Source: Antechinus flavipes
Taxonomy: Eukaryota
DNA: 64,000 nucleotides
Reading direction: 5' to 3'
Assembly: GCF_016432865.1 (NCBI RefSeq)
Contig: NC_067400.1
Span: forward strand, 619,256,001 to 619,320,000
The notes below the pieces were generated by a model. That model had not been told where the DNA came from. It saw only the letters and a list, made by a program, of their open reading frames with translations, and did no database searches. Shown here piece by piece: positions 4,010 through 61,190 of the stretch (positions are counted from its first letter, which is position 1; the number at the start of each line of letters is the position of its first letter). A program made the position numbers and the translations under genes.

Positions 4010-5419
4010 ATGGCCCCCGGGTGGACGAGGATCCCACTGCGCCTCTTTCTCCTGGGAGCTGCCCTGGCCCTCACGGGTGGGTGTTTGGGCCGAGGCTCCG
4101 CGCTGGGACCCTGGGTGGGAGCTGGTCCCCAAGGCAGGGCCAGCGTCTCCTCCCTGCTGCTTTCCCCGCAGGAGCCCTCTTCTGTCACCGGGGCATCCTG
4201 ATCCGCCTTGGGAGAATCCCCACCCAGTTCCTGGCCAACTGGACGCTATCGCAGGAGCAATGTGATGAAGAGGACATGTGTCAGGACACCATTCTGATCT
4301 TAGAGACAGGTAGCCCGGAGGAGGAGCCCCTCCCCCCCAGCCTTCCTTCCTTTGAGCCTCTCTGCCTTCTGAAGATCCCAGTCTGAGAGCCGGCAGGGAC
4401 TCATAGTCTGCTGTCAGCCTTTTCCTGGGCGCTGACCTTCCCTGGTCTAGATTGGTTCCTAGCTCTGACATTCTCGGTTCTAAATTTGCTCCCAGTTCTG
4501 GCGTTGATGCTCTAAGATCCTCCCAACTTTGCCATGTCCGTTCAAGGTAGCAGCAACATGCGGAGTTGGAAGGATTGTTAGGCGATGTCCAAACTGTCTG
4601 GTTTTACTCCCGACCCGGAAACACAACTCGCTGCGGCGGAGGCTGCCCAGCTCCCTTTGGGGCGGCGCTAATTGGCAGGACATTTTGTTTGAAATCTGCT
4701 TCCTGTGACCCCCATTGCTCCCGTTTTGAACCCAATACATTTTGTTACCAGCCTGTCCTGCAGGACCCTGCCCGGCCCTCGTGGTGAGAAAAGCAGGTCT
4801 TTTATGAGAAGGTAGCACCTGGCCCCAGGCAGCTTCCGTCTTGGGGGGGTCTGGCCCTGCCCCAGAATCGTCTGGCACCGGGAAGGGGGCCAGTCCCCTG
4901 TGCTCCAGGAGAGTGTGACCAGGAGGAGCTGAGAGGAACTGAGAAAGGCTCGGGGGCAGGGGGCAGCCGAACTGAGCTTTGAGAGAGGAGCATTCTGGGA
5001 GGAGGAAACAGACTGCGTGGGAGGGCCAGAAGAATAGACATCCGGCCACCGAGCTGAATTTGAAATCTTGTGGGGATCAACGTAAACTCTTGTTCTCAGG
5101 CCCAAAAAATCAATTTCCAGTCTGAGGCAGAGCTAGTTTGACTAGTGAGGACTCAGGGATGCGCAATAAGCCCAGAAAGGCACATTGGAGCCAAACTGCG
5201 AAGAGCCTGCGATCCTGGGCTGAGAAAGGGGGAAGTGTCCGGGATGTCCCCGGGCCGGGCAGTTAGAAGGAAGTGACCTTTTGCCCCATTCGATTCTAAT
5301 CCCATTCCACATTGCCTTCTAGAACAGCTGTATCGATTCACAGCTCCACCAACAATGTACTGATTTGTTTTAGAAGACTTTCTAAGATTCTGCCAAAGGG
5401 GAAAGAGGAAGAGAGAGAC

Positions 5420-5452
<33 letters not shown>

Positions 5453-8400
5453 AAACAGGAGCGGGGGAGAGGAGGAGAGGGAAGGAAGGAGGGAAAGAGA
5501 AAACAGGGGGGAGGGAGGGAAAGAGAAGGAGGCAGAGAGGGAGAGAGTTTAAAGGGATGGCAGGTTCAAGGCAAGTTTTTTCTCTTGCTTTTTTGGGTGG
5601 TTTGGTGGGCTTTGCTTTTGCTTTTTTAGGATAGAGAACACCTGCCTATATTTTAAGCAGCAGTGAACAGGCCAGGAGAGAACAGGACATTGAAGACGTG
5701 ACCAATGAACAAGGTCCTGAAGGAACTGGGAGGGACAGAAACACGAAGACCCACAGAAGAGCACGTTGGGGAGAAGGGCACCTCATCCTCAGGCTGGAGA
5801 AGAGGAGAGGACGGATGGAGCTGGGCTGAAGGGGGAGCAGCTGCTGTGGGCAGTCCGGTAGGGACCAGAGAGAGGAGCGCCCAGGCCAGGAACAGGCCGT
5901 GGTCTCCTAAGGGAGCCAACCCATGGTTCGATGGCCTCCTCCAGCCTTTGGTTTTCCTTTGTTTGGAAGCAGGAGCAGAAAGGGGGGAGGGAGCAGCTGT
6001 GAACAGCAGGAACAGATGGAATGGAAGAACTCGGGAGTCCGGATGGTGGCGAGCAGTTAGCCGGAGCCTAATGGAGACGGAAGGGGTCTGGTGTACGCCC
6101 AGCACTTCATACACAGCCCTGGCGCAGAGGCTGTCGTCTCCCAGACAAGAAAAGTAACTTACGGGTTAAGGGCCCAGAGTCACTCTGGAAGGAAGCGTCC
6201 AAGGCAGGATTTGAACTCGGGTTTTCCTGGTTCAGGTGCCTCCTAAGCCGCCTCTCCCGCACTGTGGAGAGAGGAAAAGGAGGTCAGTATGGAGGTGATG
6301 GATTGGGGGAACAGGGAAGGATGAAGGAGCCAGAGACGGGAGAGCAGGAAAAGCAAGTGTGAGAGGAGGCAGGTGCAGGGAGAGACAAGAGAAAGGATAA
6401 ACCTGAGATTGAAGCTGGAACCCTGGGGATCACCTAGACCCCCAGGCTTCATCCAGCTGCCAGGAAACTGAGGTCCAGAGAACCTTAGTCCAGAATCACA
6501 GGGTCAGAGTCAGAAAGGGGCTCGGGATGCAAGATGGTGGGCCGCCCCCCGGTGCCCTAGGGTAGAGGAAATGGAGGGGGGACCATAGGCCTGGGGGTCA
6601 ATGGTCATTGGTGTGAATACAGAGGGGCCAAGCTGGGCCCTACACTCCTCCAGGAAGGGAGGCCCTGGAGAGGAGGGTTCCAAAGGGGGTCCCGGGCTGG
6701 GGGCTCCTGCCTAGAGAGGCTCCGAAGGCCTGGAGTTTCTCTCTCCCCCTCCCCCCAAGGCGTAAGGTGGGAAAAGCCTAGAAGAGGGGGAGACGGGGAG
6801 CCCCAGAACAGGGACCGATGGCAGGAGGCCCCTCGGGAGCCAGGTCCCTTCCCATTCCAGGCCTGCGTCGCTGCCCGTGTTTGGGCCAGGGCAGGATTTG
6901 AAGCCGGGCCTTCCGGCCAGTGGGGCCTACGGCTCCCGCCCTGAGGAGCTCTGTCTTTCAGAACTGCAGGGCATCATCATCGCCACCAAAGGGTGCTTCC
7001 GCGAGACCCTGCAGGAGCCCACCGTCGTCAAGTACACGCAGCCCCCCGGCGTGGCGGCCACGTCCTACACGCACTTCTGCTCCACCGACTTCTGTAACAA
7101 TTACACTGACCCGAAGCCGCTGACGAAGCCCCCCAGAGGGGCAGGTGAGAACCAGAGCGGCCCAGCCTTGGAGCAGCATCTCTGACTCCTGCTGTGCGCT
7201 CAAGCAGGGCCCTTCCGCTCTCCGGGCCTCAGTCTGCTGCTCTGCATGGTGGGCCCGTCCCAGACGAGGTTCCGTGGAGCTCCATGGACCAGATGGGCCC
7301 TAAATCCCACGGAGACCCTGACATTGTCCCAGCCCAATCCTTGTGACCCACCTGGGGTTTTCGAGCAAAGTTTTCAGAGGGTTTGCTGTTTCCTTCCCAG
7401 ATGAGGAAACTGAGGCAATTGCCCAGGGTTCCAGGGCCGGACAGCTAGTAAGTACCAGAGGCGGGATTTGCACTTGGGTCCTCCCGAGTCTGAGCCCGGG
7501 GCGCTCTCTGCTGTACTACCCAGCTGCCCGCTCTGATGACTGGACAAGGTTGGGTAACAGCTGGATTATTGGAGATCTTGGGGGAGAGTCCATATGGGTC
7601 AATATGGAAGGAAATGGCTGATGGATTCGGGCAGGGAGAGATGGGAAGGACCCCGCGGGGTGGGAACGCTCCCTGGATTTAGAGCCAGTGGGTCTGGGTC
7701 CATGTTGGTGACCAGCTTGTGATCCCGGGGTCTCGGTGGCCTTCTCCTTAGGATCCGACCTCCAGGGTCCCTTCCAGCTCTGCTAGGTTGAGCCAGGCCC
7801 TAGACCCATGGATGTGGCAGCTGGGTGGCAGGGCCTGAGGGCCCACCCCTCCCCTGTCCCCCAGTCAAAAGTTGGCCGTCCCGGTCAGTCAGAGCAAAGG
7901 GCCTTGGGTGGGGGCCCACAGAGCTTGGGCTTCCCCACGGGTTCTAGGCGCTGGGCCCTCCCGCCTCTGAGAGCCTGGGGACACAGTCCCCAAGTTGGGT
8001 CTGCAGGGGCCCCGCTGACGGCCTTTCTCCTCCCCTTCCAGTCAGCCCCCACCAAGAGGGCCTCATGTGCCCCACCTGTGTCTCCCTGGGGCCCTGTGTC
8101 CCCGGCTCTCCGGTCATGCACTGCCCTAAGCTCACCCTTTCCTGCTACAGCGGGACCATCATGATCAAGGGAGGTAGGTGGGAAGTCAGACGGGCTGGGG
8201 AGGGCTGCCCCACCCCGCAGGGCCGGCTCCCAGAGGACACGGGGTCCCCAGGGCTGTGGGGAGCCCCCCGGGTGGTGCCTGGAGACAGAGACCCCCTGCT
8301 GAACACCCTCCCCCCTCCCCAGGAGGCATCTGGACTCCAGTGGACCTGGAGGGCTGCATGGGCGAGATCAGCTGCCGCCTGCTGAACAAAACGCACACCA

Positions 8401-8531
8401 TCGGGCCCCTGGAAGTGAACGAGCTGTGCGACCGCAGCAGCTTGTTTGATAACTTCAGGATGGACGGGGCCAGCGGCCCGCTCCCCGCCTCTGTGTGGGC
8501 TCTGGGCCTGGGCTCCCTGCTGCTCCTGTAG
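4010..8531 (+). CDS. TEX101: TEX101-like GPI-anchored Ly6/uPAR protein with two LU domains, 242 aa, 5 coding exons
   Basis: Exons 4010-4076 (signal peptide MAPGWTRIPLRLFLLGAALALT), 4172-4309, 6962-7144, 8042-8173, 8323-8531. All introns are GT-AG phase 1 and the exons total 729 nt. Motifs LFC..NWT..C..CQDTILI, ATKGC..PPG..TSY..FC..FCNN and CPTCVSLG.C..CY.G..KGGGI..GC..CRL..GP..E.C resemble TEX101, and there is a hydrophobic GPI tail. Orientation opposite to LYPD3 matches human TEX101. Orthology versus CD177/Lypd10/Lypd11 needs a tree. Confidence 0.8.
5410..5550. repeat. GA-rich microsatellite / low-complexity tract
   Basis: Runs of gagaca, gaga and ggga. Confidence 0.85.
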
Positions 8532-10833: not shown

Positions 10834-10839
10834 TTTATT
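10834..10839 (-). terminator. PolyA signal of the extra Ly6/uPAR paralog
   Basis: TTTATT on the plus strand, about 180 nt past stop 11016. Confidence 0.7.
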
Positions 10840-11015
10840 TGGTATCTGTGCGGCAGGCGGCCCCGGCTCGGGTTGCTGCACTTTGGGTGCATCTCCTGCC
10901 CCTGGGATCCCGGGGCCACCCCCTCTGCCGGCCCCAGGCAGCCCCCGGGCCTGGGGGGGCCCCTCTGCCCGGCTCCCCGGGGGACTATGGGACGTCCAGC
11001 CGGGGAAGCCTCGGC

Positions 11016-14000
11016 CTACAGAGTGACGAGCAGTCCCAGCCCGAGGGCCCAGAGCCAGCCGGGCCGGGGCGCGCCCCCGCTCCTGGGCCACAGGACGCTG
11101 TGGTGGTCCAAGCACTTCTCGCTCAGGGTGAAGGAGCCCACCGTCTCCATGCCGAGAAACAGCTCACAGGCGGGCACCGTGGAGCAGCCAAGCAAACCCA
11201 GCACGTAGGAGGTGCTTTCTACGGGGAGGGAGAGAGCCGTGGGTGCCGGGGGCCGGGGCCTCCAAGGCCCTGCTTCTGCCCCCAACGGGGGTCTCGGGTG
11301 TCCAGAAACTGACTTAGACGACCTCGAGGGGCCGGGACCTCCAGCCAGGAACCGAGGCCCTGGGCCAGGGGGTCTGCGGGGAGAGCCTCCTGCGGCGGGA
11401 GCTACCCGGGCCAGGGGCCTCCTGCGGTGGGAGCTACGTGGGCCAGGGGCCTCCTGGGGTGGGAGCTACCCGGGCCAGGGGCCTCCTGGTGGAGGCCCTG
11501 GAGTTTGCATTCTAGCAGCCCACCTGGTGGGAGGTGTGGGGGGGGGGCAGCCCTGCCTGCATGAACTCTTCCGGGCTCACAACGGCCTCAATGGCCGAGG
11601 GAGCGGGCCGAGCCTTTCCCAGAATCCCCCGCCTGTCGGGCGGCCCGAGCCCAGCGTTCCCTCCCACCACTCGGGCCCCACTCTGTCCAGCCAGCGGCCC
11701 AGAGGGCACCAGAGGTCAGAGGCAGCGCCGGGGCTCCAAGGCCCGTCCTTGCCCCCCATGCCCCACATGACCACGGAACCAGGGGCCCGGCTCCAGAGGA
11801 CGCCTCTGCCCTCCCGTGGGACGGGGACCGCTCCCCGCTGCGGCCCGGCCGCACTCACCTCCCTTGATGCTAATGGTTCCGTTGTAACAGCGGAGCGCCT
11901 TCTCGCCGCACGGCCGGAAGCGGACCTTGGTGGGGCAGGAGTACAGGGCCAAGCAGGTCGGGCACCGCAAGGCCTGCTCGGGGTTTCCGATGGCTGGAGG
12001 AAGGGAAGGGGCGTGGCTGCGGCCGTGGGCCCTGGGGGAGGAGTGCCGGGGAGAGGGGGCCTGGGGTCCCCGGGGGCCCCTCTCTGTGGGCAGCCTCTGC
12101 CCAGCGGCCTCTCATCCAACCTCTCGCTGCGGCCCCCCCAGCACTGTAGCGGGCCCGCCGCCTCGAGGACGTGGGCCTTCTGCCTGCCCCGGGACACTGA
12201 CCGGCCCCCCGGAGCACCGGCCCCCTCCCTTCCCGCACTGCCAGGGAGAGCCCGGCTGCCCATCAGGTACCCGGGCCCTGGCCGCGGACCGCCCATCCCC
12301 CGCCCGGCGTCCTGCACTTCCCGGGGGGCCTCCTGCTCCCACCGCCGCCACCCTGGGCTGCGGGTGGGCCCCGGCTCTGCCCTGGCTGAGAAGCTGGGAC
12401 GCAGCCCCCACTGCCCGAGCCCGGCTCCTGGGACCCCCGGGGAGGCCACGTCGGTTGTGACGAGTTCTCTGGGGAAGCTGAGCGACCCACGGGGTGACCA
12501 GCTGGGGATCCGGCCAAGGAGCCCCCACGACCCTGGGCCCAAGCCCGGACACCCGCCGGAGGCTGGTCTGGGAGGCAGTCGGGGGCCTGGGCGTGGCTGA
12601 GGGCTCTGCCCCGGCCTGTGGAGACCAAGGGGGAGTTCCCTCGTGGATCCTGATCCCCCATCTCCAAAAACCAGCTGGAAAGCAACACTCCACAAAGGGA
12701 AATGTCTGGGGGCCTCTGGCCAATGCACCGAGGGAAGGCCAGGGGGAAGGCCAGGGGGAGGGAGGAAGGGAGGGGGGAAGGGAGGGAAGGCCGGGGGGCC
12801 ACATTCCCAGGAATGAGCATAAAAGAAGCATCGGGAGGGGTGGTCTCGGGGTCCCTCCCTATCAGCAGCACTACATGGGGGGGCTCTAAGGGGCGGGGGC
12901 AGAAGAGGAGCTCCGGAGAGCCGGGGGGAGTCAGGCACTCTGAGAGGTCAGCAGACGAGGTCACGGGGATCCCGAGAAACGCCGTGGGGAGGGAGGCCAT
13001 GAGACAGTGAGGGAGGCCCCGGAATACAATAAAAAGGGGGCAGGGGCTGAGAGGCAGATCCGAGAGAATGGGAGGGGGAGAAGTTAGGAGGAGCGTTAGG
13101 CAAAGGGAAGGTCGGGGCGCTCTGGCCACCGAGGGGCAGGGGGCGCGGAGAGCGGGCTGCGAGCCCCGGCCCCGGGCTACCTAGGTGGGCCTTGGGTCTC
13201 AGCACCGGGGCCGTGCTGCTCGAGTTGTTACAGTAGTTGACATTGCAGAAGCGGACGTAGGAAGTGACAATAATTCCTGGTGGGCCCAAGTGTTCCGTGA
13301 CCCCCGACAGCCGGTTCCCTGCTGGAGTGCAGCCTTTACTGCCCATGATCAGTGACTGGGGCCCTAGGAGAGGAGCAGGAGATTGGCAGAGGCTGGAACC
13401 CCCCGGGGGCGGAGGGGCCCGAGCCTCAGGTCAGGTAGAAGGGAGCACAGAAGCCTCGGGACTTCGGCCCCCACCCCCTCCTCTCCCCGCTGCGGGCCTC
13501 AGCCCCTTTTTACATGTTGGCACGAGCCAGACAGATACCCCAGGGAAGGCAAGGACCCGAGCAGGAGGGAGGGGAGGGAAGGGAGGGAAGAGAGGGAGGG
13601 AGGGAAGGGAGGGTCCTCGCTGCCTTCCCCTGGCTTTTAACAGTGGCCAGAAAGGAAACTGAGGAATTGAGCGCGCTCTCTCGTCCAAGAAATTCTTGGG
13701 GGGGGGGGCAGAGTCCTTGACATCCTGGATTAAACGGGACTTCTTTCCCCTGAGTCAGAGCGTCCGGGACGATGGGCTGAGGCGGCCGGGACATGGGGGC
13801 GCTTTGGGCGCTCCTGGCTGGGGAAGTGGGGGCCCCGAGCTCTGCGCCCCGAGAACCGTCGGCCAGCTCTGCCGGGAAGCGGCGCCTCAGTAAGCAGGGT
13901 CCCGGCGGAGGAGGGCGCAGAGCGGCTCGGTGACCACGGCCGGCCGGAGACAGGGGGCACCCTGGCAGGGCCCGGACGCTCAGCTACTCCCACATCTCCG

Positions 14001-15625
14001 GGGCCTCCTCACACGGGGCCGTTACCCATGTAGCCCCTTTTCCAGCTTTTGCGCCATGCAATAGCCTGTGGGAGCCCGTGCATCCCAGGGCACAGGGCAG
14101 GGCCTTTAATTGTCGCCTTTTCTGGGGCATTTGAGACGCCATCTTTGGATCTGACCCAGTGGCTCACCCCTAACTGCGCTACGAGTTTTAGCGGCGCTGA
14201 CCCGCAGAGGACTCTTAGAGTTTTCCTGAGAGCGGCACATGTCGGGGATGACCCCGGAGGGCATATATGGAAGAGAAGACTGGGGTTCAGAGAGGGCAGG
14301 TGAATCATAAATCACGGGTTATAAAAATGGGGAACACTCTGGCAATCCTATAATAACCCCCCTTAATGTTCTAGACAAGTACGCGGGCTGAGGAGTTCTC
14401 TAAAGCAGCCGGATTCAAAGCCACTGTCCCCTCCTCCCCCCGCCCCACTCCGGCTGCCCTCAGTTACCTGTCTCCAGCATCAGCAGGGTCTCCTGACACA
14501 CCTCCCAGTTCTCACAGCGCCGGGAGTGCCGCAGGCTGGAGCTCCAGAGCTCGGGCTCCGAGTTCAGCTTCCGCCCCAGGTACAGCATCTCCGTGTGGTA
14601 ACAGGTGATGGGGGGCAGCAGTGGGAAGATGGGGTGCATGGGGCGGCTCCCTGCAAAGGGAGGGAGGGGCCCGTCAGCCCCTGACCTCCCGCACGGAGCC
14701 GGACTCCCGCCCCCGGGACTCCCGCACGGACCCAGGCTCCCCCGCACGGACCCGGGCTCCCACCCCCGGGACTCCCGCATGGACCCAGACTCCCGTCCCT
14801 GACCCTCCCGCACGGCCCCAGGCTCCCCCGCACGGACCCGGACTCCCGCCCTGAGGACTCCCGCACGGACCCGGGCTCCCGCCCCGGGGACTCCCCGGAG
14901 ACTCCCGCACGGACCCGGGCTCCCACCCCTGACCCTCCCACACAGACCCGACCCCGGGGACTCCCGCACGGACCCGGGCTCCCACCCCTGACCCTCCCAC
15001 ACAGACCCGACCCCGGGGACTCCCGCACGGACCCGGGCTCCCGCCCCCGGGACTCCCGCACGGACCCGGGCTCCCGCCCCCGGGACTCCCGCACGGACCC
15101 GGGCTCCCGCCCCTGGGACTCCCGCACGGACCCGGGCTCCAATCCCCGGGACTCCCGCACGGACCCGGGCTCCCACCCCTGGGACTCCCGCACGGACCCG
15201 GGCTCCAATCCCCGGGACTCCCGCACGGACCCGGGCTCCCACCCCTGACCCTCCCGCACGGACCCGGGTTCCCGCCCCTGACCCTCCCGCACGGACCGGG
15301 CTCCCGCCCCCGGGACTCCCGCACGGACCCGGGCTCCCGCCCCCGGGACTCCCGCACGGACCGGGCTCCCGCCCCGGGGACTCCCGCACGGACCGGGCTC
15401 CCGCCCCGGGGACTCCCGCACGGATCGGGCTCCCGCCCCGGGGACCCCCGCACGGACCGGGCTCCCGCCCCTGACCCTCCCGCACGGACCGGGCTCCCGC
15501 CCCCGGGACTCCCGCACGGACCCGGGCTCCCGCCCCCGGGACTCCCGCACGGACACACACACACCAGTCTGGGCGAGGGAGGCTCCCACGAGTCCGAGCA
15601 GCAGCGGGAAGGCTGGACAGCCCAT
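11016..15625 (-). CDS. Additional TEX101/CD177/LYPD4-family GPI-anchored Ly6/uPAR protein with two LU domains, 254 aa, 5 coding exons
   Basis: Exons 15625-15565 (MGCPAFPLLLGLVGASLAQT, Kozak gcgccATGG), 14650-14468, 13363-13181, 11993-11859, 11218-11016. All introns are GT-AG phase 1 and the exons total 765 nt. Motifs ITCY..CENWEVCQETLLMLETG, MGSKGC..VTEH..PPGIIVTSYVRFCNVNYCNN and LRCPTCL..CYNG..KGG..GC..C..EKC, with GPI tail WLWALGLGLLVTL. AATAAA on the minus strand at 10834-10839. Confidence 0.88.
11385..11490. repeat. ~32-bp minisatellite, about 3 copies
   Basis: gggagctacccgggccaggggcctcctg repeated. Confidence 0.85.
14690..15555. repeat. GC-rich ~31-bp minisatellite filling intron 1 of the Ly6/uPAR paralog
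   Basis: ggactcccgcacggacccgggctcccgcccc(c)g and variants, more than 25 copies. Confidence 0.95.
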
Positions 15626-16404
15626 GGCGCGGGGTCTGCGGTCGTCCCTGGCCCCTGGGACCCAAGAAGAGAGCGGGGCAATGAAGGGCCCCTTGCTAGG
15701 ACGCTACTGTCCGCTCCTCCCCCAGACCCCGCTCCGGGGTCTTCTCCACCGTCAGACCCCGAGTCCTCCCCGCGTCAGGTCCCTCCCATCATCGCTCCCA
15801 CCCAAGGACTCCCCGGGTCACTCCCGCCTAAAGCTCGGATTTCTAAAGCTCCGTGCCCCCCACCCCGTCCCAGCGAGAGGAGCCTCCAAGGGGGCGCTCA
15901 GACAGAGAAACCTCCACTCCCAACCCTCCCCCACACCCGAGCCCCACAATCCCTGCTTCCTTCCCTCCCAATCAACGAGCATTTATGTGCCCCGGCCACG
16001 ACCCCCCACAGTCTCCCTCTCTCCAACACAGAAAGCTCCGTCCCTCAAACTCTAAGCCCCTCCCCTCCCCACAAGCCCCGCCTCATCCTAAAACGAGCCC
16101 CGCCCCCACCCTCCCCATAACCCAAGCCTCGCCCATCCAATCCTACGTCCCTCCCCTAGTCCACAAGCCCTGTCCTTCCCCTCCCCCACAGCACAAGTCC
16201 CGCCTCTTTCCCTCTCCCACATCAGGGCCCACCCCCAAAGGCCCATGCCCTTCTCGGGCCTCGCCTCTCCCTCCCCGCCCCCTCAATCAAGCCCCTCCTC
16301 CCTCCCTCCAACGGCCCCTCCCTCGAGCCTGTAGACAGGGGGCGGGGCCAGTCTGCCCCGTTCCCCCCCTTCCCCTAATGTGGGGAGGTTAGGGGGAGAA
16401 GAGT

Positions 16405-16690
16405 CCTTGCCCCATTGGTCAGCCAGCCTTTACATCCCTCACCATCCCCATCCCATCCCCCACCACGTTCCATTGGCTAAAGTCTTGCAAAAGGGTGGGT
16501 TCCTATTGGCTATTTTAAGGGAGGGACGAGATGTTCTTCGGCATTGGTGGAGAGATTGGCTCCTGGAAGGGGCTTCTCTCCCATTGGCCGGTGGGGGGCG
16601 CGTGATCGACATTGTTCCCACGTGCGCCAGGTCCTGTGCCTTCCCTTCTTCGCACCTTCTCCTCCAACCTATGCAGCACCAATAGGAGAG
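16405..16690 (-). promoter_or_regulatory. CCAAT-box cluster, probable promoter of the minus-strand Ly6/uPAR paralog
   Basis: Six ATTGG (CCAAT on the minus strand) at 16414, 16472, 16505, 16543, 16555 and 16583, plus one CCAAT at 16679. The acceptor at 15655-15656 shows that the ATG exon is preceded by a 5' UTR intron. Confidence 0.6.
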
Positions 16691-19652: not shown

Positions 19653-22600
19653 TCACGGGAGAGCGCTGGCGGCCAGGGCCGCCAGGAGCGCCGCCAGCGG
19701 CAGGGCCAGGGTCCCGGGGCTCCCGTTGGTGGGGTGCTGGGAGCCGCCCTTAGGGGGCAGCTGCCCCACGTTGCTCCGGTCGCTGTGGCCGACGGCCCCC
19801 CTGCCGGCCCCTCCCTCCTCGCGCAGAGTCTCCACGGGGGTCTCGGAGCGAGAGGCCGGCTCGGTGGCGGGGGCCTGGAGGGTGGTGGATGGGGGCCGGC
19901 GGGTGGAGGGGGCCGGGGTCGCGGTGGAAGCGGGGGTGGGTGCCGAGGGCTTGGTGGCCGTGGAATTGGGGCGGGCGGTCGTGGGCGGGGGCAGCACCAC
20001 GAGGGGAGGGATGCCGGGAGCGAAGTAGGTCTTGTTGCGGAGGTCGGCGTTGCAGCGCGAGCCTTCGCAGCAGGAGCCGCTGAGGGAGAAGCCGGGGCCC
20101 GTCAGCCCGTCTCTGGTGCAGCTCTCGTCCTGGACGCAGCCTCGGACCGGCAAGGACACGGTCACGTTGGCTGCGGGAAACCAAGCGGGGCGGGACAGTG
20201 GTTAGAGCCCCGGGGGGGGGGGGGGGGGAGTGGGTCAGGGAGGGGGAAGCCCCCGACCCTCTGGGGCCTCAGTTTCCAAATCTGTAAAAAGATCCCACGA
20301 TTTGGGGGTTTTCAAGGCAAGGTTACTGAGCGATTCGCCAAATCCTTCTCCCCAAGGGACTGTAGTCCCCCGGGAGGGGGAAGGGAAGGCTGAGGGGGCT
20401 GGGACGCCATTTCCCCCACGGAGTGGGAGGGGGTTCTTCGCCGAGGGGGAAAGGAGGCGAGGGAATCTCGGGAGCATCTGCAGGCCTTCTCTGCCCCCAC
20501 CCCACACTGTTGCCCCTCTCTCTCTCCTCCGGGGTACATGCTGAGCGTGTCTCCCCCTCCCCCCACCTCCGGAAGTCTCCTGAGGGCAGGAACCATTTCT
20601 CTGTTTGCCTGAGGCTGGGGTGGGGGGTGCCCTCGGGCCCTGCTTCCCAGAAGGCTCTGGGAAGAGGGGCGGTGCCCCCTCCCCCACCCCTCCCCTCCCC
20701 CCTCACCTGCGGTCAGGGTGACATTCCCGTCAAAGCAGCCCTTGTGCAGCCGGTCCCCCGCGTTGTAGCACTGGGCCAGGGGGGGCTTGGAGCCCGCGCA
20801 CGCCTCCCGGCTCAGCCCCACGCAGCTGTAGCACTCCACTCCGTTGGGCTCGTGGGCACTCTCGTTCCCTGCGTGGGCGGCGGAAGGGGGCCGTGGGTCA
20901 GATGTTCCGCGGGCTACACTGAGTCTCGGCGCCCCCCCCCCCTTTTCTCAGTCTCGGGCCCAGGCCCCTGCGGAATCCAGTCCCACACCCGGCCGTGGGC
21001 TTCGCCAGCCTTTGCCGGAAGCCCCCCAAGAGGGGAAACCGAGGCAGGCCTGACTGGGCAGCCTGCCTTCCCGGCCCGGTTCCTAGCTCTGGGTTAGGGC
21101 CTAGTCAGGAAACCTCATCTTTGGGAGTTCAAATCCGGCCTCTGACACTTAACCCTTCTTAGCTGGGTGACCCTGGGCAAGTCACTTAACCCCCACGGCC
21201 TCAGCAAAAAAAAAGTCATCTTAATATTTTTTGATGAAGCATTTTGCAAAATTTAAAAATGCTACATGAATGTGAACTAATATTAAGTTTTATTTTCTAC
21301 TTGTTTCTCAATTGGGACAAAATGGGTGGGAGGGATTAATTAAAATGTATTAATTAAATTATTATGCAAATCAACAATTAAGCCAATTAATTGTTGTTAA
21401 TTAACACTTATTTTTACTATTTTATGTGTATTGTGTAGCATGTGTATAGATAGCTGTATAGAACAAAGCTAAGGAAATAAAGTTTATTTTTACAAAGACG
21501 ATCTCCGGATGTACTTACATACATAGCCAAAGCAAGGACTGTTTTTAAAATAAAAATAAAAAGTGTCATCTTATTGGGGCTGCCCCAATGTCCCATCATG
21601 CTACAGTCTTTGGGAATCCGGACAGTTACCCGGAGAATCACTGCTAACCCCGAGCCATTTGTCGGGAGGTACTAACTCTCTTTGTTAAATAGCCCAGCTC
21701 CGAGCCCGGTCCCTGGGGCTCCTCTAGAGCCTCCCGGGGGAGACCAGCCCTTACTGGCAGCTCCTCGAGCCCGTGTCACCCATTCCGCATCCACCCGGCT
21801 GCGCCACTGCCCGGCGCGAGGGCATCCTCCGTTTGGCCAGGGATCCCTCCGTCGCCCGCTTGGCAAAAACGCCCAGCGGCGCTCCCGGCCCTGACCACGG
21901 CGACCCGGCCGAAATGGAGCTGAGTGCAGCGCCCTGAGAAAGGGGGGCTCGGCGTTGCCTCCTGGGAGTCACCCAGCCAATCTCTCCATTTCACGGAGGG
22001 GGAAACTAAGGCCGGGCAGGGCTGGCCCTGGACTGGAGAGCAGCGGGCTCGGAATTTGGACCCTCTGGTTTCCGCCCGGAGAAGGGCCCTGCCCCTCCCT
22101 GGACGCCCGGCCCCGCTCACCGCTGGGGTTCAGGCGGTGCGAGGTCAGGTTGAGCTGGTCGTTACACAGGTCCTTGTCGCACTGCTGCAGCTGGTGGAAG
22201 GCCAGGATCCCGTGCAGGTCCAGCCCCCGGTCGTTCTTTCCCGAGAGTCCCGATCCACAGCCGCGGATGGCCAGCGAGAACTGCCCGTGAACTGGAGGGG
22301 AGAACCGGGCCGCGGGATGAGAAGGGGAGGGCCGGACCAGGGAGGAGTTAAGGAGGACCGGGAGAGGGAGGACTTGGGGACTCAGACAGAGGGAGGACTC
22401 AGAGGGAGACTCCAGAGGGGGAGGACTCAGACAGAGGGAGAGCTCAGAGGGAGACTCCAGAGGGGGAGGACTCAGACAGAGGGAGAGCTCAGAGGGAGAC
22501 TCCAGATGGGGAGGACTCGGGGACTCAGACAGAGGGAGGACTCAGAGGGAGACTCCAGAGGGGGAGGACTCGGGGACTCAGACAGAGGGAGGACTCAGAG

Positions 22601-43650: not shown

Positions 43651-44642
43651 ATGCTGGAGCGAGGGGAGCAAGGGCCTGGGGGCAGAGGCAGGAGCCCTTC
43701 TGCAAAGGAATCAGTTACCAACGGAGGGGGTGAGAACCACTGGGCACCGGCTGGGGGCTCCCCACCCCGGGAAGAGGGCGGGGATCCCACGGAAGCTTGG
43801 CGAACAGAGGCATGAATCCTGCGGGCAGCCCCCTAGAAAAGGCACGGGAGGGACCCATTGGAGGGAGGGGAGCCCAGGAGGGGCATGGGGGCCCCGGGGG
43901 GCCTCTGTGGCCCGGGTGGCAGCCCCAGGGCACCGTCTGATCCCCCTCCTCAGCCTCCGGCAAAGCCTCCAAGCCAAAGCGGAGCCCGGCAGCTGCGGCC
44001 GAGCGCCCCGGTCCGTCCAGGGCCCGCCGCCCACCGCCCCTCCAGCGCCCGCACCGCTGCCCGGACTGTGACAAGGCCTTCTCCTACCCCTCCAAGCTGG
44101 CCACCCACCGCCTGGCTCACGGCGGTGCCCGCCCACACCCCTGCCCTGACTGCGACAAGGCCTTCTCCTACCCCTCCAAGCTGGCCGCCCACCGCCTCAC
44201 CCACAGCGGTGCCCGCCCCTTCCCCTGTCCGGACTGCCCCAAGGCTTTTGGTCACCGATCCAAGCTGGCTGCCCACCGCTGGACCCACTCGCCGGCCCGC
44301 CCCTACCCCTGCCCAGACTGCCCCAAGTCTTTTTGCTACCCCTCCAAGCTGGCCGCCCACCGACACACCCACGCTGGCGGCACTCGGCCCTACCCCTGCC
44401 CACAGTGCCCCAAGTCCTTCTGTTACCCCTCCAAGCTGGCAGCCCACCAGCGGCGCCACGCCCCCACTGCCGCCGGAGCCCCTATCCCGGCCGCCCCCAC
44501 GCCCGCCGCCCCAGCAGACCCTCAGCACCGCTGCCCCAGCTGTGACCAAACCTTTGGCCAGCGCCGCCTCCTGGCCCTTCACCAGCGCAGCCACCGAGGA
44601 GAAGGGAAGGCTGGGAAGGGAGGAAAGGGGGAGCGGGCCTGA
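43651..44642 (+). CDS. ZNF575: Zinc finger protein 575 with six C2H2 fingers, 255 aa, 2 coding exons
   Basis: Exon 43651-43729 (MLERGEQG...) is spliced in phase 1 to 43954-44642, which reads PHRCPDCDKAFSYPSKLATHRLAHGGARPHPCPDC... through HRCPSCDQTFGQRRLLALHQRSH. This frame is absent from the ORF track because the large exon has no start codon of its own. AATAAA at 44671-44676. Confidence 0.95.

Positions 44643-57273: not shown

Positions 57274-61190
<3,917 letters not shown>

Follow-up and report, generated by a model that had tools for sequence, protein, structure and literature searches.

What gene lies between TEX101 and LYPD3 in marsupials, and how is it related to the other Ly6/uPAR (LU) genes of this cluster? 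The question is raised by a 64,000-nucleotide (nt) stretch of Antechinus flavipes DNA (RefSeq assembly GCF_016432865.1, contig NC_067400.1, positions 619,256,001 to 619,320,000 of the forward strand), which is referred to as the window and whose numbering is used throughout. A minus-strand gene of 254 codons plus TAG, running from window 15625 to 11016, is flanked there by a TEX101-like gene (the neighbour) and LYPD3, and is called the focal gene below. We consider it probable that the focal gene is a working marsupial-lineage paralog of the TEX101/CD177 subgroup, which encodes a glycosylphosphatidylinositol (GPI)-type surface glycoprotein with two LU domains and arose by duplication in stem marsupials.

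Direct reading of the sequence, with in-frame translation of every exon, places the start ATG at 15625 and the stop codon at 11016-11018 on the minus strand. The coding sequence of 765 nt is divided among five exons of 61, 183, 183, 135 and 203 nt, the last including TAG. Exon 1 (15565-15625) carries the ATG and the signal peptide in 20 codons plus 1 nt and ends in a phase 1 donor; its translation is 100% identical to residues 1-21 of the ortholog from the devil (Sarcophilus; protein P0001). Exon 2 (14468-14650) encodes a conserved N-terminal extension rich in proline and then the first half of LU domain 1, and exon 3 (13181-13363) encodes the second half of this domain, with its C-x4-C-N-N end and an NNSS sequon, and the start of the linker. 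LU domain 2 begins in exon 4 (11859-11993), with the pattern C-x2-C-x5-C-x8-C-x6-C and an NGT sequon, and is completed in exon 5 (11016-11218), which continues into a small-residue stretch and a hydrophobic GPI-type tail. All introns are of the GT..AG type with a polypyrimidine tract, and all are in phase 1. The start codon lies in a strong Kozak context (G at -3, G at +4), and the 3' untranslated region (10834-11015) contains an AATAAA signal at 10839-10834, 177 nt past the stop. The first-pass annotation had described a complete five-exon, 254-residue gene with signal peptide, two LU domains, sequons, GPI-type tail, Kozak context and AATAAA, and each of these elements is present in the sequence.

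The predicted product begins with a signal peptide with the hydrophobic core FPLLLGLVGASLA, followed by an 18-residue proline-rich stretch that precedes the first Cys. LU domain 1 contains 6 Cys and LU domain 2 contains 8, with a linker between them, and the N-glycosylation sequons are at N127/N128 and N180. At the C-terminus, the small residues S-G-G-A and a short spacer lead into a 13-residue hydrophobic stretch, and this end, with its tail WLWALGLGLLVTL, resembles those of TEX101 and CD177; the protein is most likely GPI-anchored to the outer membrane leaflet. The Cys residues of LU domain 1 (C37, C66, C72, C93, C121 and C126) align with Cys 1, 4, 5, 6, 9 and 10 of the family pattern, with pairs 2-3 and 7-8 absent, and we infer that the domain lacks the 2-3 and 7-8 disulfide bonds. 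A missing 7-8 bond is a mark of the N-terminal domain in all multi-LU proteins of the PLAUR/LYPD3/TEX101/CD177 cluster (PMC6600238). A separate exon pair with phase-1 borders encodes each LU domain (2+3 and 4+5), an arrangement characteristic of the multi-LU GPI-anchored proteins of this cluster (Leth et al. 2019, PMC6600238).

Family and fold searches were run exon by exon (exon 3 within its own open frame) or with database orthologs, and the joined 254-residue model served only for local counting, for the ratio of non-synonymous to synonymous rates (dN/dS) and for one tree row. Among the window exons taken singly, only exon 4 matches the Pfam family UPAR_LY6 (PF00021) below threshold, at 19.3 bits, while domain 2 of the 96%-identical devil ortholog scores 45.9 bits against a cut-off of 24.8. 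Pfam gave no match on domain 1 of this ortholog, and domain 1 aligns with domain 1 of the solved TEX101 and CD177 structures. A profile of six orthologs matched solved CD177 with an E value of 2.4e-57 (108.7 bits for the D3-D4 unit, formed by LU domains 3 and 4, and 95 bits for the D1-D2 unit) and solved human TEX101 with an E value of 2.6e-31 (112 bits). The AlphaFold model, built from a 33-row alignment on the devil ortholog and not on the window protein, has a predicted local distance difference test score of 82.9 and consists entirely of beta structure over residues 36-121 and 152-223. Foldseek gave CD177 (9igp, E 1e-18) and TEX101 (7bpr, template modelling (TM) score 0.88, root-mean-square deviation 2.3 Å) as its best matches, with the C4.4A and uPAR structures matching far less well. 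On the strength of this model, the product is predicted to be a three-finger LU-fold protein of the TEX101/CD177 type with two tandem domains. Nothing comparable to the conserved proline-rich stretch that precedes the first Cys occurs in the neighbour, in platypus TEX101 or among the inspected sequences of eutherian TEX101. This stretch may act in binding or may once have been a linker.

The devil RefSeq protein, named 'testis-expressed protein 101-like', is also 254 residues long and aligns without gaps to the focal product, with 244/254 residues identical, and the devil DNA (locus L001) keeps every splice site of the focal gene. The view that this is more than a chance reading frame is thereby borne out. 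A search with exon 3 found RefSeq proteins of seven marsupials at 79-97% identity, and in total orthologs are predicted in at least eight marsupials from five orders (devil, wombat, wallaby, opossum, monito del monte, bilby, brushtail possum and glider), the full-length ones having 236-278 residues. Across six full-length orthologs, identity to the devil protein is 67-81% and 117 columns are invariant; among these columns are every one of the 14 Cys in the mature protein, the NGT sequon and a P-x-F-P motif in the N-terminal stretch (P27, F29 and P30).

Comparison with Sarcophilus gave 23.5 synonymous and 10.5 non-synonymous differences (dS 0.13, dN 0.019), corresponding to a dN/dS of 0.14 for the whole protein and 0.11 for its mature part; the neighbour has a dN/dS of 0.07 at the same dS. 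At the DNA level, the exons are 95-98% identical to those of Sarcophilus and the introns 77-83%, and 3 of 10 replacements sit in the exon 5 tail. The focal gene was also compared with DNA contigs from three related organisms, at about 1%, 3.5% and 4.6% divergence. No indel was found in exons 1, 3, 4 and 5 of the relative at about 3.5% divergence, or in exons 1, 3 and 5 of that at about 4.6%; exon 2 was covered solely by the closest relative and by one contig with gaps that could not be placed. Among the 40 of 186 differences listed for these contigs, five lie in exon 5: two silent ones, and three conservative replacements within the anchor-signal tail. The dN/dS check that had been suggested at the outset thus indicates constraint, with an undisrupted frame and splice sites in the devil, and the substitution pattern points strongly to purifying selection on the focal gene.

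These data bear on whether the focal gene might be a chance open frame, a pseudogene or an artefact of annotation. Such an origin would be in keeping with the finding of no RNA run covering the stretch, and with the fact that all database entries are computer predictions. It is opposed by the intact frame and splice sites in both Antechinus and Sarcophilus, by full-length orthologs, the low dN/dS, the invariance of all Cys and a confident fold model, and we consider it very improbable indeed. By our own dating, about 80 million years have passed since the marsupial lineages with full-length orthologs diverged.

An exhaustive HMMER search of 1.84 billion representatives returned 101 proteins, with names read for 30 representatives. 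Scored per two-LU unit, marsupial orthologs alone exceeded 380 bits, and all other units scored 135 bits or less. In a tree of 46 two-LU units with LYPD4 as the outgroup, the focal clade consists of marsupial proteins only, with support of 100/100 and a stem of 1.19. Further groups are formed by the neighbour (100/100), by eutherian TEX101 (100/99) and by eutherian CD177 D3-D4 (99/96), within which rodent Lypd10/11 are nested, and eutherian CD177 D1-D2 joins both marsupial CD177 units in a larger clade with weak support (87/76). The tree also holds two further marsupial two-LU groups and platypus 'TEX101', with LYPD4 split off by a 100/100 branch. The best tree does not unite the focal gene with eutherian TEX101, and the mean identity between the focal gene and each other group is 29-35%. 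Within-group conservation is 79% for the focal gene among marsupials versus 47% for TEX101 among eutherians. By these comparisons, the focal gene is a distinct lineage within the TEX101/CD177 group that has no eutherian or monotreme member. The early description 'marsupial-specific or eutherian-lost' fits a clade in which marsupial proteins stand alone. A position close to the common ancestor of CD177, TEX101 and LYPD4, which had also been proposed, does not hold, as the focal gene branches within the CD177/TEX101 group, on a stem that is long and derived, and resembles LYPD4 less than it does any other group (70 bits by BLAST, versus 90-107 bits).

The first-pass annotation had named a one-to-one ortholog of LYPD4, CD177 or Lypd10/11 as the outcome that would speak against a new lineage, and the LU-unit tree places the focal gene with none of them. 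LYPD4 was ruled out because it is the outgroup, separated by a 100/100 branch, and the least similar group, and Lypd10/11 were ruled out by their nesting within eutherian CD177 D3-D4. Orthology to the whole of CD177 was likewise ruled out: the focal gene is a single unit, and a separate 455-residue CD177 in wombat groups with eutherian D1-D2. A match to LYPD3 contributed by two hyena isoforms carrying that name (P0024 and P0028) was rejected, these being CD177-like mis-annotations.

The order LYPD3, focal gene and convergent TEX101 was confirmed in the window by exon matches, in agreement with the map first proposed, and is the same in devil and wallaby. In wombat, LYPD3 is followed by the focal gene in the same order, and the returned stretch lists no gene on its TEX101 side. 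In platypus, TEX101 converges on LYPD3 across a gap of 1.6 kb that contains no LU exon. The focal gene is co-oriented with LYPD3, and it is the neighbour that has the orientation of platypus TEX101. Published human and mouse gene orders list no gene between TEX101 and LYPD3 (PMC4839075), which agrees with the earlier statement that no human protein-coding gene is known at this place. Since platypus, human and mouse are all without a gene there, a gain in stem marsupials is the most parsimonious account, requiring one gain instead of two losses.

Several points weigh against this account of the focal gene as a working, stem-marsupial paralog. One gain and two independent losses differ by one event only, and the absence of the gene from eutherians is drawn from annotated proteins and published gene order, not from a search of eutherian DNA for relics. 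The deep nodes of the 46-unit tree have support below 40 and do not settle the order of the groups. Approximately unbiased (AU) tests, which bear on the source and time of the duplication, allow three sister relations for the focal gene: to the neighbour (p 0.46), to eutherian CD177 D3-D4 (p 0.49) and to eutherian TEX101 (p 0.25), the last costing 4.05 log-likelihood units. The GPI-type tail was assessed by eye, no RNA run covering the stretch was found, and splicing, tissue and protein are putative here.

An older origin, as a mammalian or therian paralog lost independently in eutherians and monotremes, would predict the long separate branch, the lack of a strongly supported sister among marsupial genes and the nearly equal distance to every other group (31-35% identity) that are observed. 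It calls for the two losses at a spot that is empty in platypus and, by the published gene orders (PMC4839075), in human and mouse, while the long stem is equally explained by fast change after duplication. We think this history unlikely, though it deserves to be kept in view.

The AU test with eutherian TEX101 also bears on whether the focal gene could itself be the true marsupial ortholog of eutherian TEX101, with the plus-strand neighbour as an extra copy. NCBI names the focal gene 'testis-expressed protein 101' in wombat and opossum, and in the ortholog profile search solved human TEX101 scored as well as any unit of CD177. The placement with eutherian TEX101 carries the cost given above, whereas placing the neighbour there costs nothing (+0.11) and is as good as the best tree (p 0.52). 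Moreover, it is the neighbour that is oriented as platypus TEX101, that NCBI names TEX101 in Sarcophilus and Trichosurus, and that is closer to eutherian TEX101 by BLAST (105 bits versus 89 for the focal gene). Sequence alone leaves both window genes as candidates for 'the' TEX101 ortholog, and on balance we regard this assignment to the focal gene as improbable.

A further possibility is descent from an ancestral stand-alone gene shared with the C-terminal half of eutherian CD177 (LU 3-4 plus GPI signal), of which the proline-rich stretch would be a former linker. Eutherian D3-D4 units are the best matches outside marsupials, at 110-135 bits and aligned from the first profile position, and placing the focal gene with them gives a log-likelihood difference of 0.00 from the best tree. 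Marsupial CD177 unit 2 is rejected as sister of D3-D4 (difference 23, AU p 0.016), which leaves D3-D4 without an obvious marsupial CD177 counterpart. On the other side, bootstrap values below 35 at all deep nodes give the grouping no positive support, the focal gene lies on the opposite side of TEX101 from CD177, and the unit 2 result is also explained by gene conversion between the marsupial CD177 units and concerns a group named after the tree had been seen. We accordingly give this ancestry a small probability. Somewhat wider is the proposal that the focal gene descends, as a stand-alone gene, from the module that corresponds to this C-terminal half, or that it is a marsupial sperm-surface fertility factor, or both; we regard it as quite unlikely. 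If the first of these is true, eutherian four-LU CD177 would have arisen by the joining of two once-separate genes, and the proline-rich stretch would be the trace of a linker.

Marsupial CD177 itself (P0039 and P0034) has both of its two-LU units grouping with eutherian D1-D2. If unit 2 is not the counterpart of eutherian D3-D4, this bears on how CD177 was assembled. The two further stand-alone two-LU marsupial groups in the tree are represented by P0067 and P0034:401-589 and by P0057 and P0081, and because of them the marsupial TEX101/CD177 cluster comprises at least five genes.

For the focal gene as a stem-marsupial paralog, the proposed course would start in stem marsupials with a duplication inside the TEX101/CD177 group; rapid change would then have produced the long stem branch before strong purifying selection set in. 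By analogy with the family, its product would be a non-enzymatic, GPI-anchored surface glycoprotein of the secretory pathway that captures or escorts another membrane or secreted protein. Such a part is played by TEX101 for sperm ADAM-type proteins and by CD177 for proteinase 3, which it presents on neutrophils, and for PECAM-1. TEX101, LYPD4 and LY6K are needed in mice for the passage of sperm through the oviduct junction. Judging from these family roles and from the TEX101 neighbourhood, a role in male germ cells is possible, at somewhat less than even chances, and a role in myeloid cells is a more doubtful suggestion. A slowly evolving extra member that is kept by marsupials only, beside TEX101, is a concrete candidate for a step in marsupial reproduction or innate immunity that is peculiar to this lineage. 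The degree of surprise is modest, since the family is known for lineage-specific duplications and computer annotation already predicts the gene.

The closest known systems share parts of this plan. TEX101 (7bpr, human; 7bps, mouse) has two tandem LU domains with three disulfides in domain 1, a GPI-type tail with W-x-x-G-L, five coding exons with phase-1 introns in the same gene cluster, and a fold that superposes on the model of the devil ortholog. It differs in that the focal protein is 28-34% identical and forms a separate clade, in having about 3 residues before the first Cys instead of 18, and in the location of the focal gene on the LYPD3 side of the gene that has the orientation of TEX101. 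CD177 (neutrophil antigen NB1/HNA-2a; 9igp, 9igo) is the best sequence and fold match, with the same two-LU unit and a similar tail, but has two such units (four LU domains, about 440 residues), and more in rodents, compared to one in the focal protein. Marsupials in addition have their own CD177 (the 455-residue wombat protein), whose units are 45% identical to eutherian D1-D2. Rodent Lypd10 and Lypd11 are, like the focal protein, stand-alone two-LU proteins of about 245 residues in the same cluster and of one-lineage origin, but they lie inside the eutherian CD177 D3-D4 clade and are 29-30% identical to the focal protein. Their genes are located between Tex101 and Cd177 (PMC4839075). LYPD4 belongs to the wider cluster, has two LU domains and acts in sperm migration, but is the outgroup to all TEX101/CD177 proteins and the least similar of these systems.

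The focal gene is not unannotated: RefSeq predicts it in at least eight marsupials, and it is already in the databases as a computer prediction, unstudied and inconsistently named. Literature searches that paired TEX101 or CD177 with marsupials or the opossum, and others on the RefSeq name, yielded no publication on it. RefSeq calls it 'TEX101' in wombat and opossum; the devil, glider and wallaby entries read 'TEX101-like', and those of monito del monte, brushtail possum and bilby 'CD177 antigen-like'. The orthologs of the neighbour are named 'TEX101' in devil and brushtail possum. The NCBI names of the two genes are thus swapped or vary across marsupials (P0001-P0011, P0143-P0146). Because RefSeq gives the focal gene three names, one of them TEX101, studies that pick 'TEX101' by name across species would compare non-orthologous genes, and correcting the naming is the practical gain from this analysis. 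A 623-residue gracile opossum model and a 626-residue wallaby model look like fusions of adjacent genes.

The neighbour (4010-8531, plus strand) is a convergent two-LU gene of 242 residues, orthologous to the Sarcophilus RefSeq protein 'TEX101' (237/242 identical). Its five exons are at 4010-4076, 4172-4309, 6962-7144 (183 nt), 8042-8173 and 8323-8531, all in phase 1. The first-pass annotation had noted that the two genes share their exon phases and one exon length of 183 nt. This stands, with the correction that exons 2 and 3 of the focal gene are both 183 nt long and that exon 3 is the one that matches. The neighbour ends in VWALGLGSLLLL followed by CTG TAG, and the W-A-L-G-L-G motif with a hydrophobic tail and final ctgTAG, reported earlier as common to both genes, was read in each. 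Recent gene conversion with the neighbour at the common tail was ruled out, as the codons differ at silent sites.

On the other side, LYPD3 (C4.4A; 19656-22541, minus strand) lies upstream of the focal gene on the same strand, with exons at 19656-20201 and 21972-22541, the first of which matches solved human C4.4A (PDB 6iom, E 1.4e-26). A 347-residue gene occupies the same place in Sarcophilus. In platypus, a guanylate-binding-protein-like gene and not CD177 was observed upstream of TEX101 (locus L002, 1-2543), and because of this the cluster is arranged differently in monotremes.

Upstream of the focal gene, six CCAAT boxes fall within 174 nt (16414-16587, minus strand), with a CACGTG nearby, 790-960 nt 5' of the ATG. 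All six (6/6) are kept in Sarcophilus (L001 9058-9227), and the block is about 93% identical, compared to 77-83% for the introns. The cluster is a likely candidate for a promoter or NF-Y-type control element of the focal gene. Intron 1 (14651-15564, 914 nt) consists largely of a GC-rich minisatellite (14741-15554) of about 25 copies in units of 33/66 nt, and the intron is 140 nt long in Sarcophilus. The contig of a related organism skips 307 nt within this intron, so the copy number of the repeat varies among close relatives.

Farther along the window, an open frame at 43941-44639 (plus strand) encodes six to seven C2H2 zinc fingers (Pfam E 2.5e-35) and stands where we presume ZNF575 to lie in this cluster. 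Another LU gene is represented by three exons at 58991-60700 (plus strand); it resembles the phospholipase A2 inhibitor family weakly, at 21.4 bits against a cut-off of 22, and is probably PINLYP.

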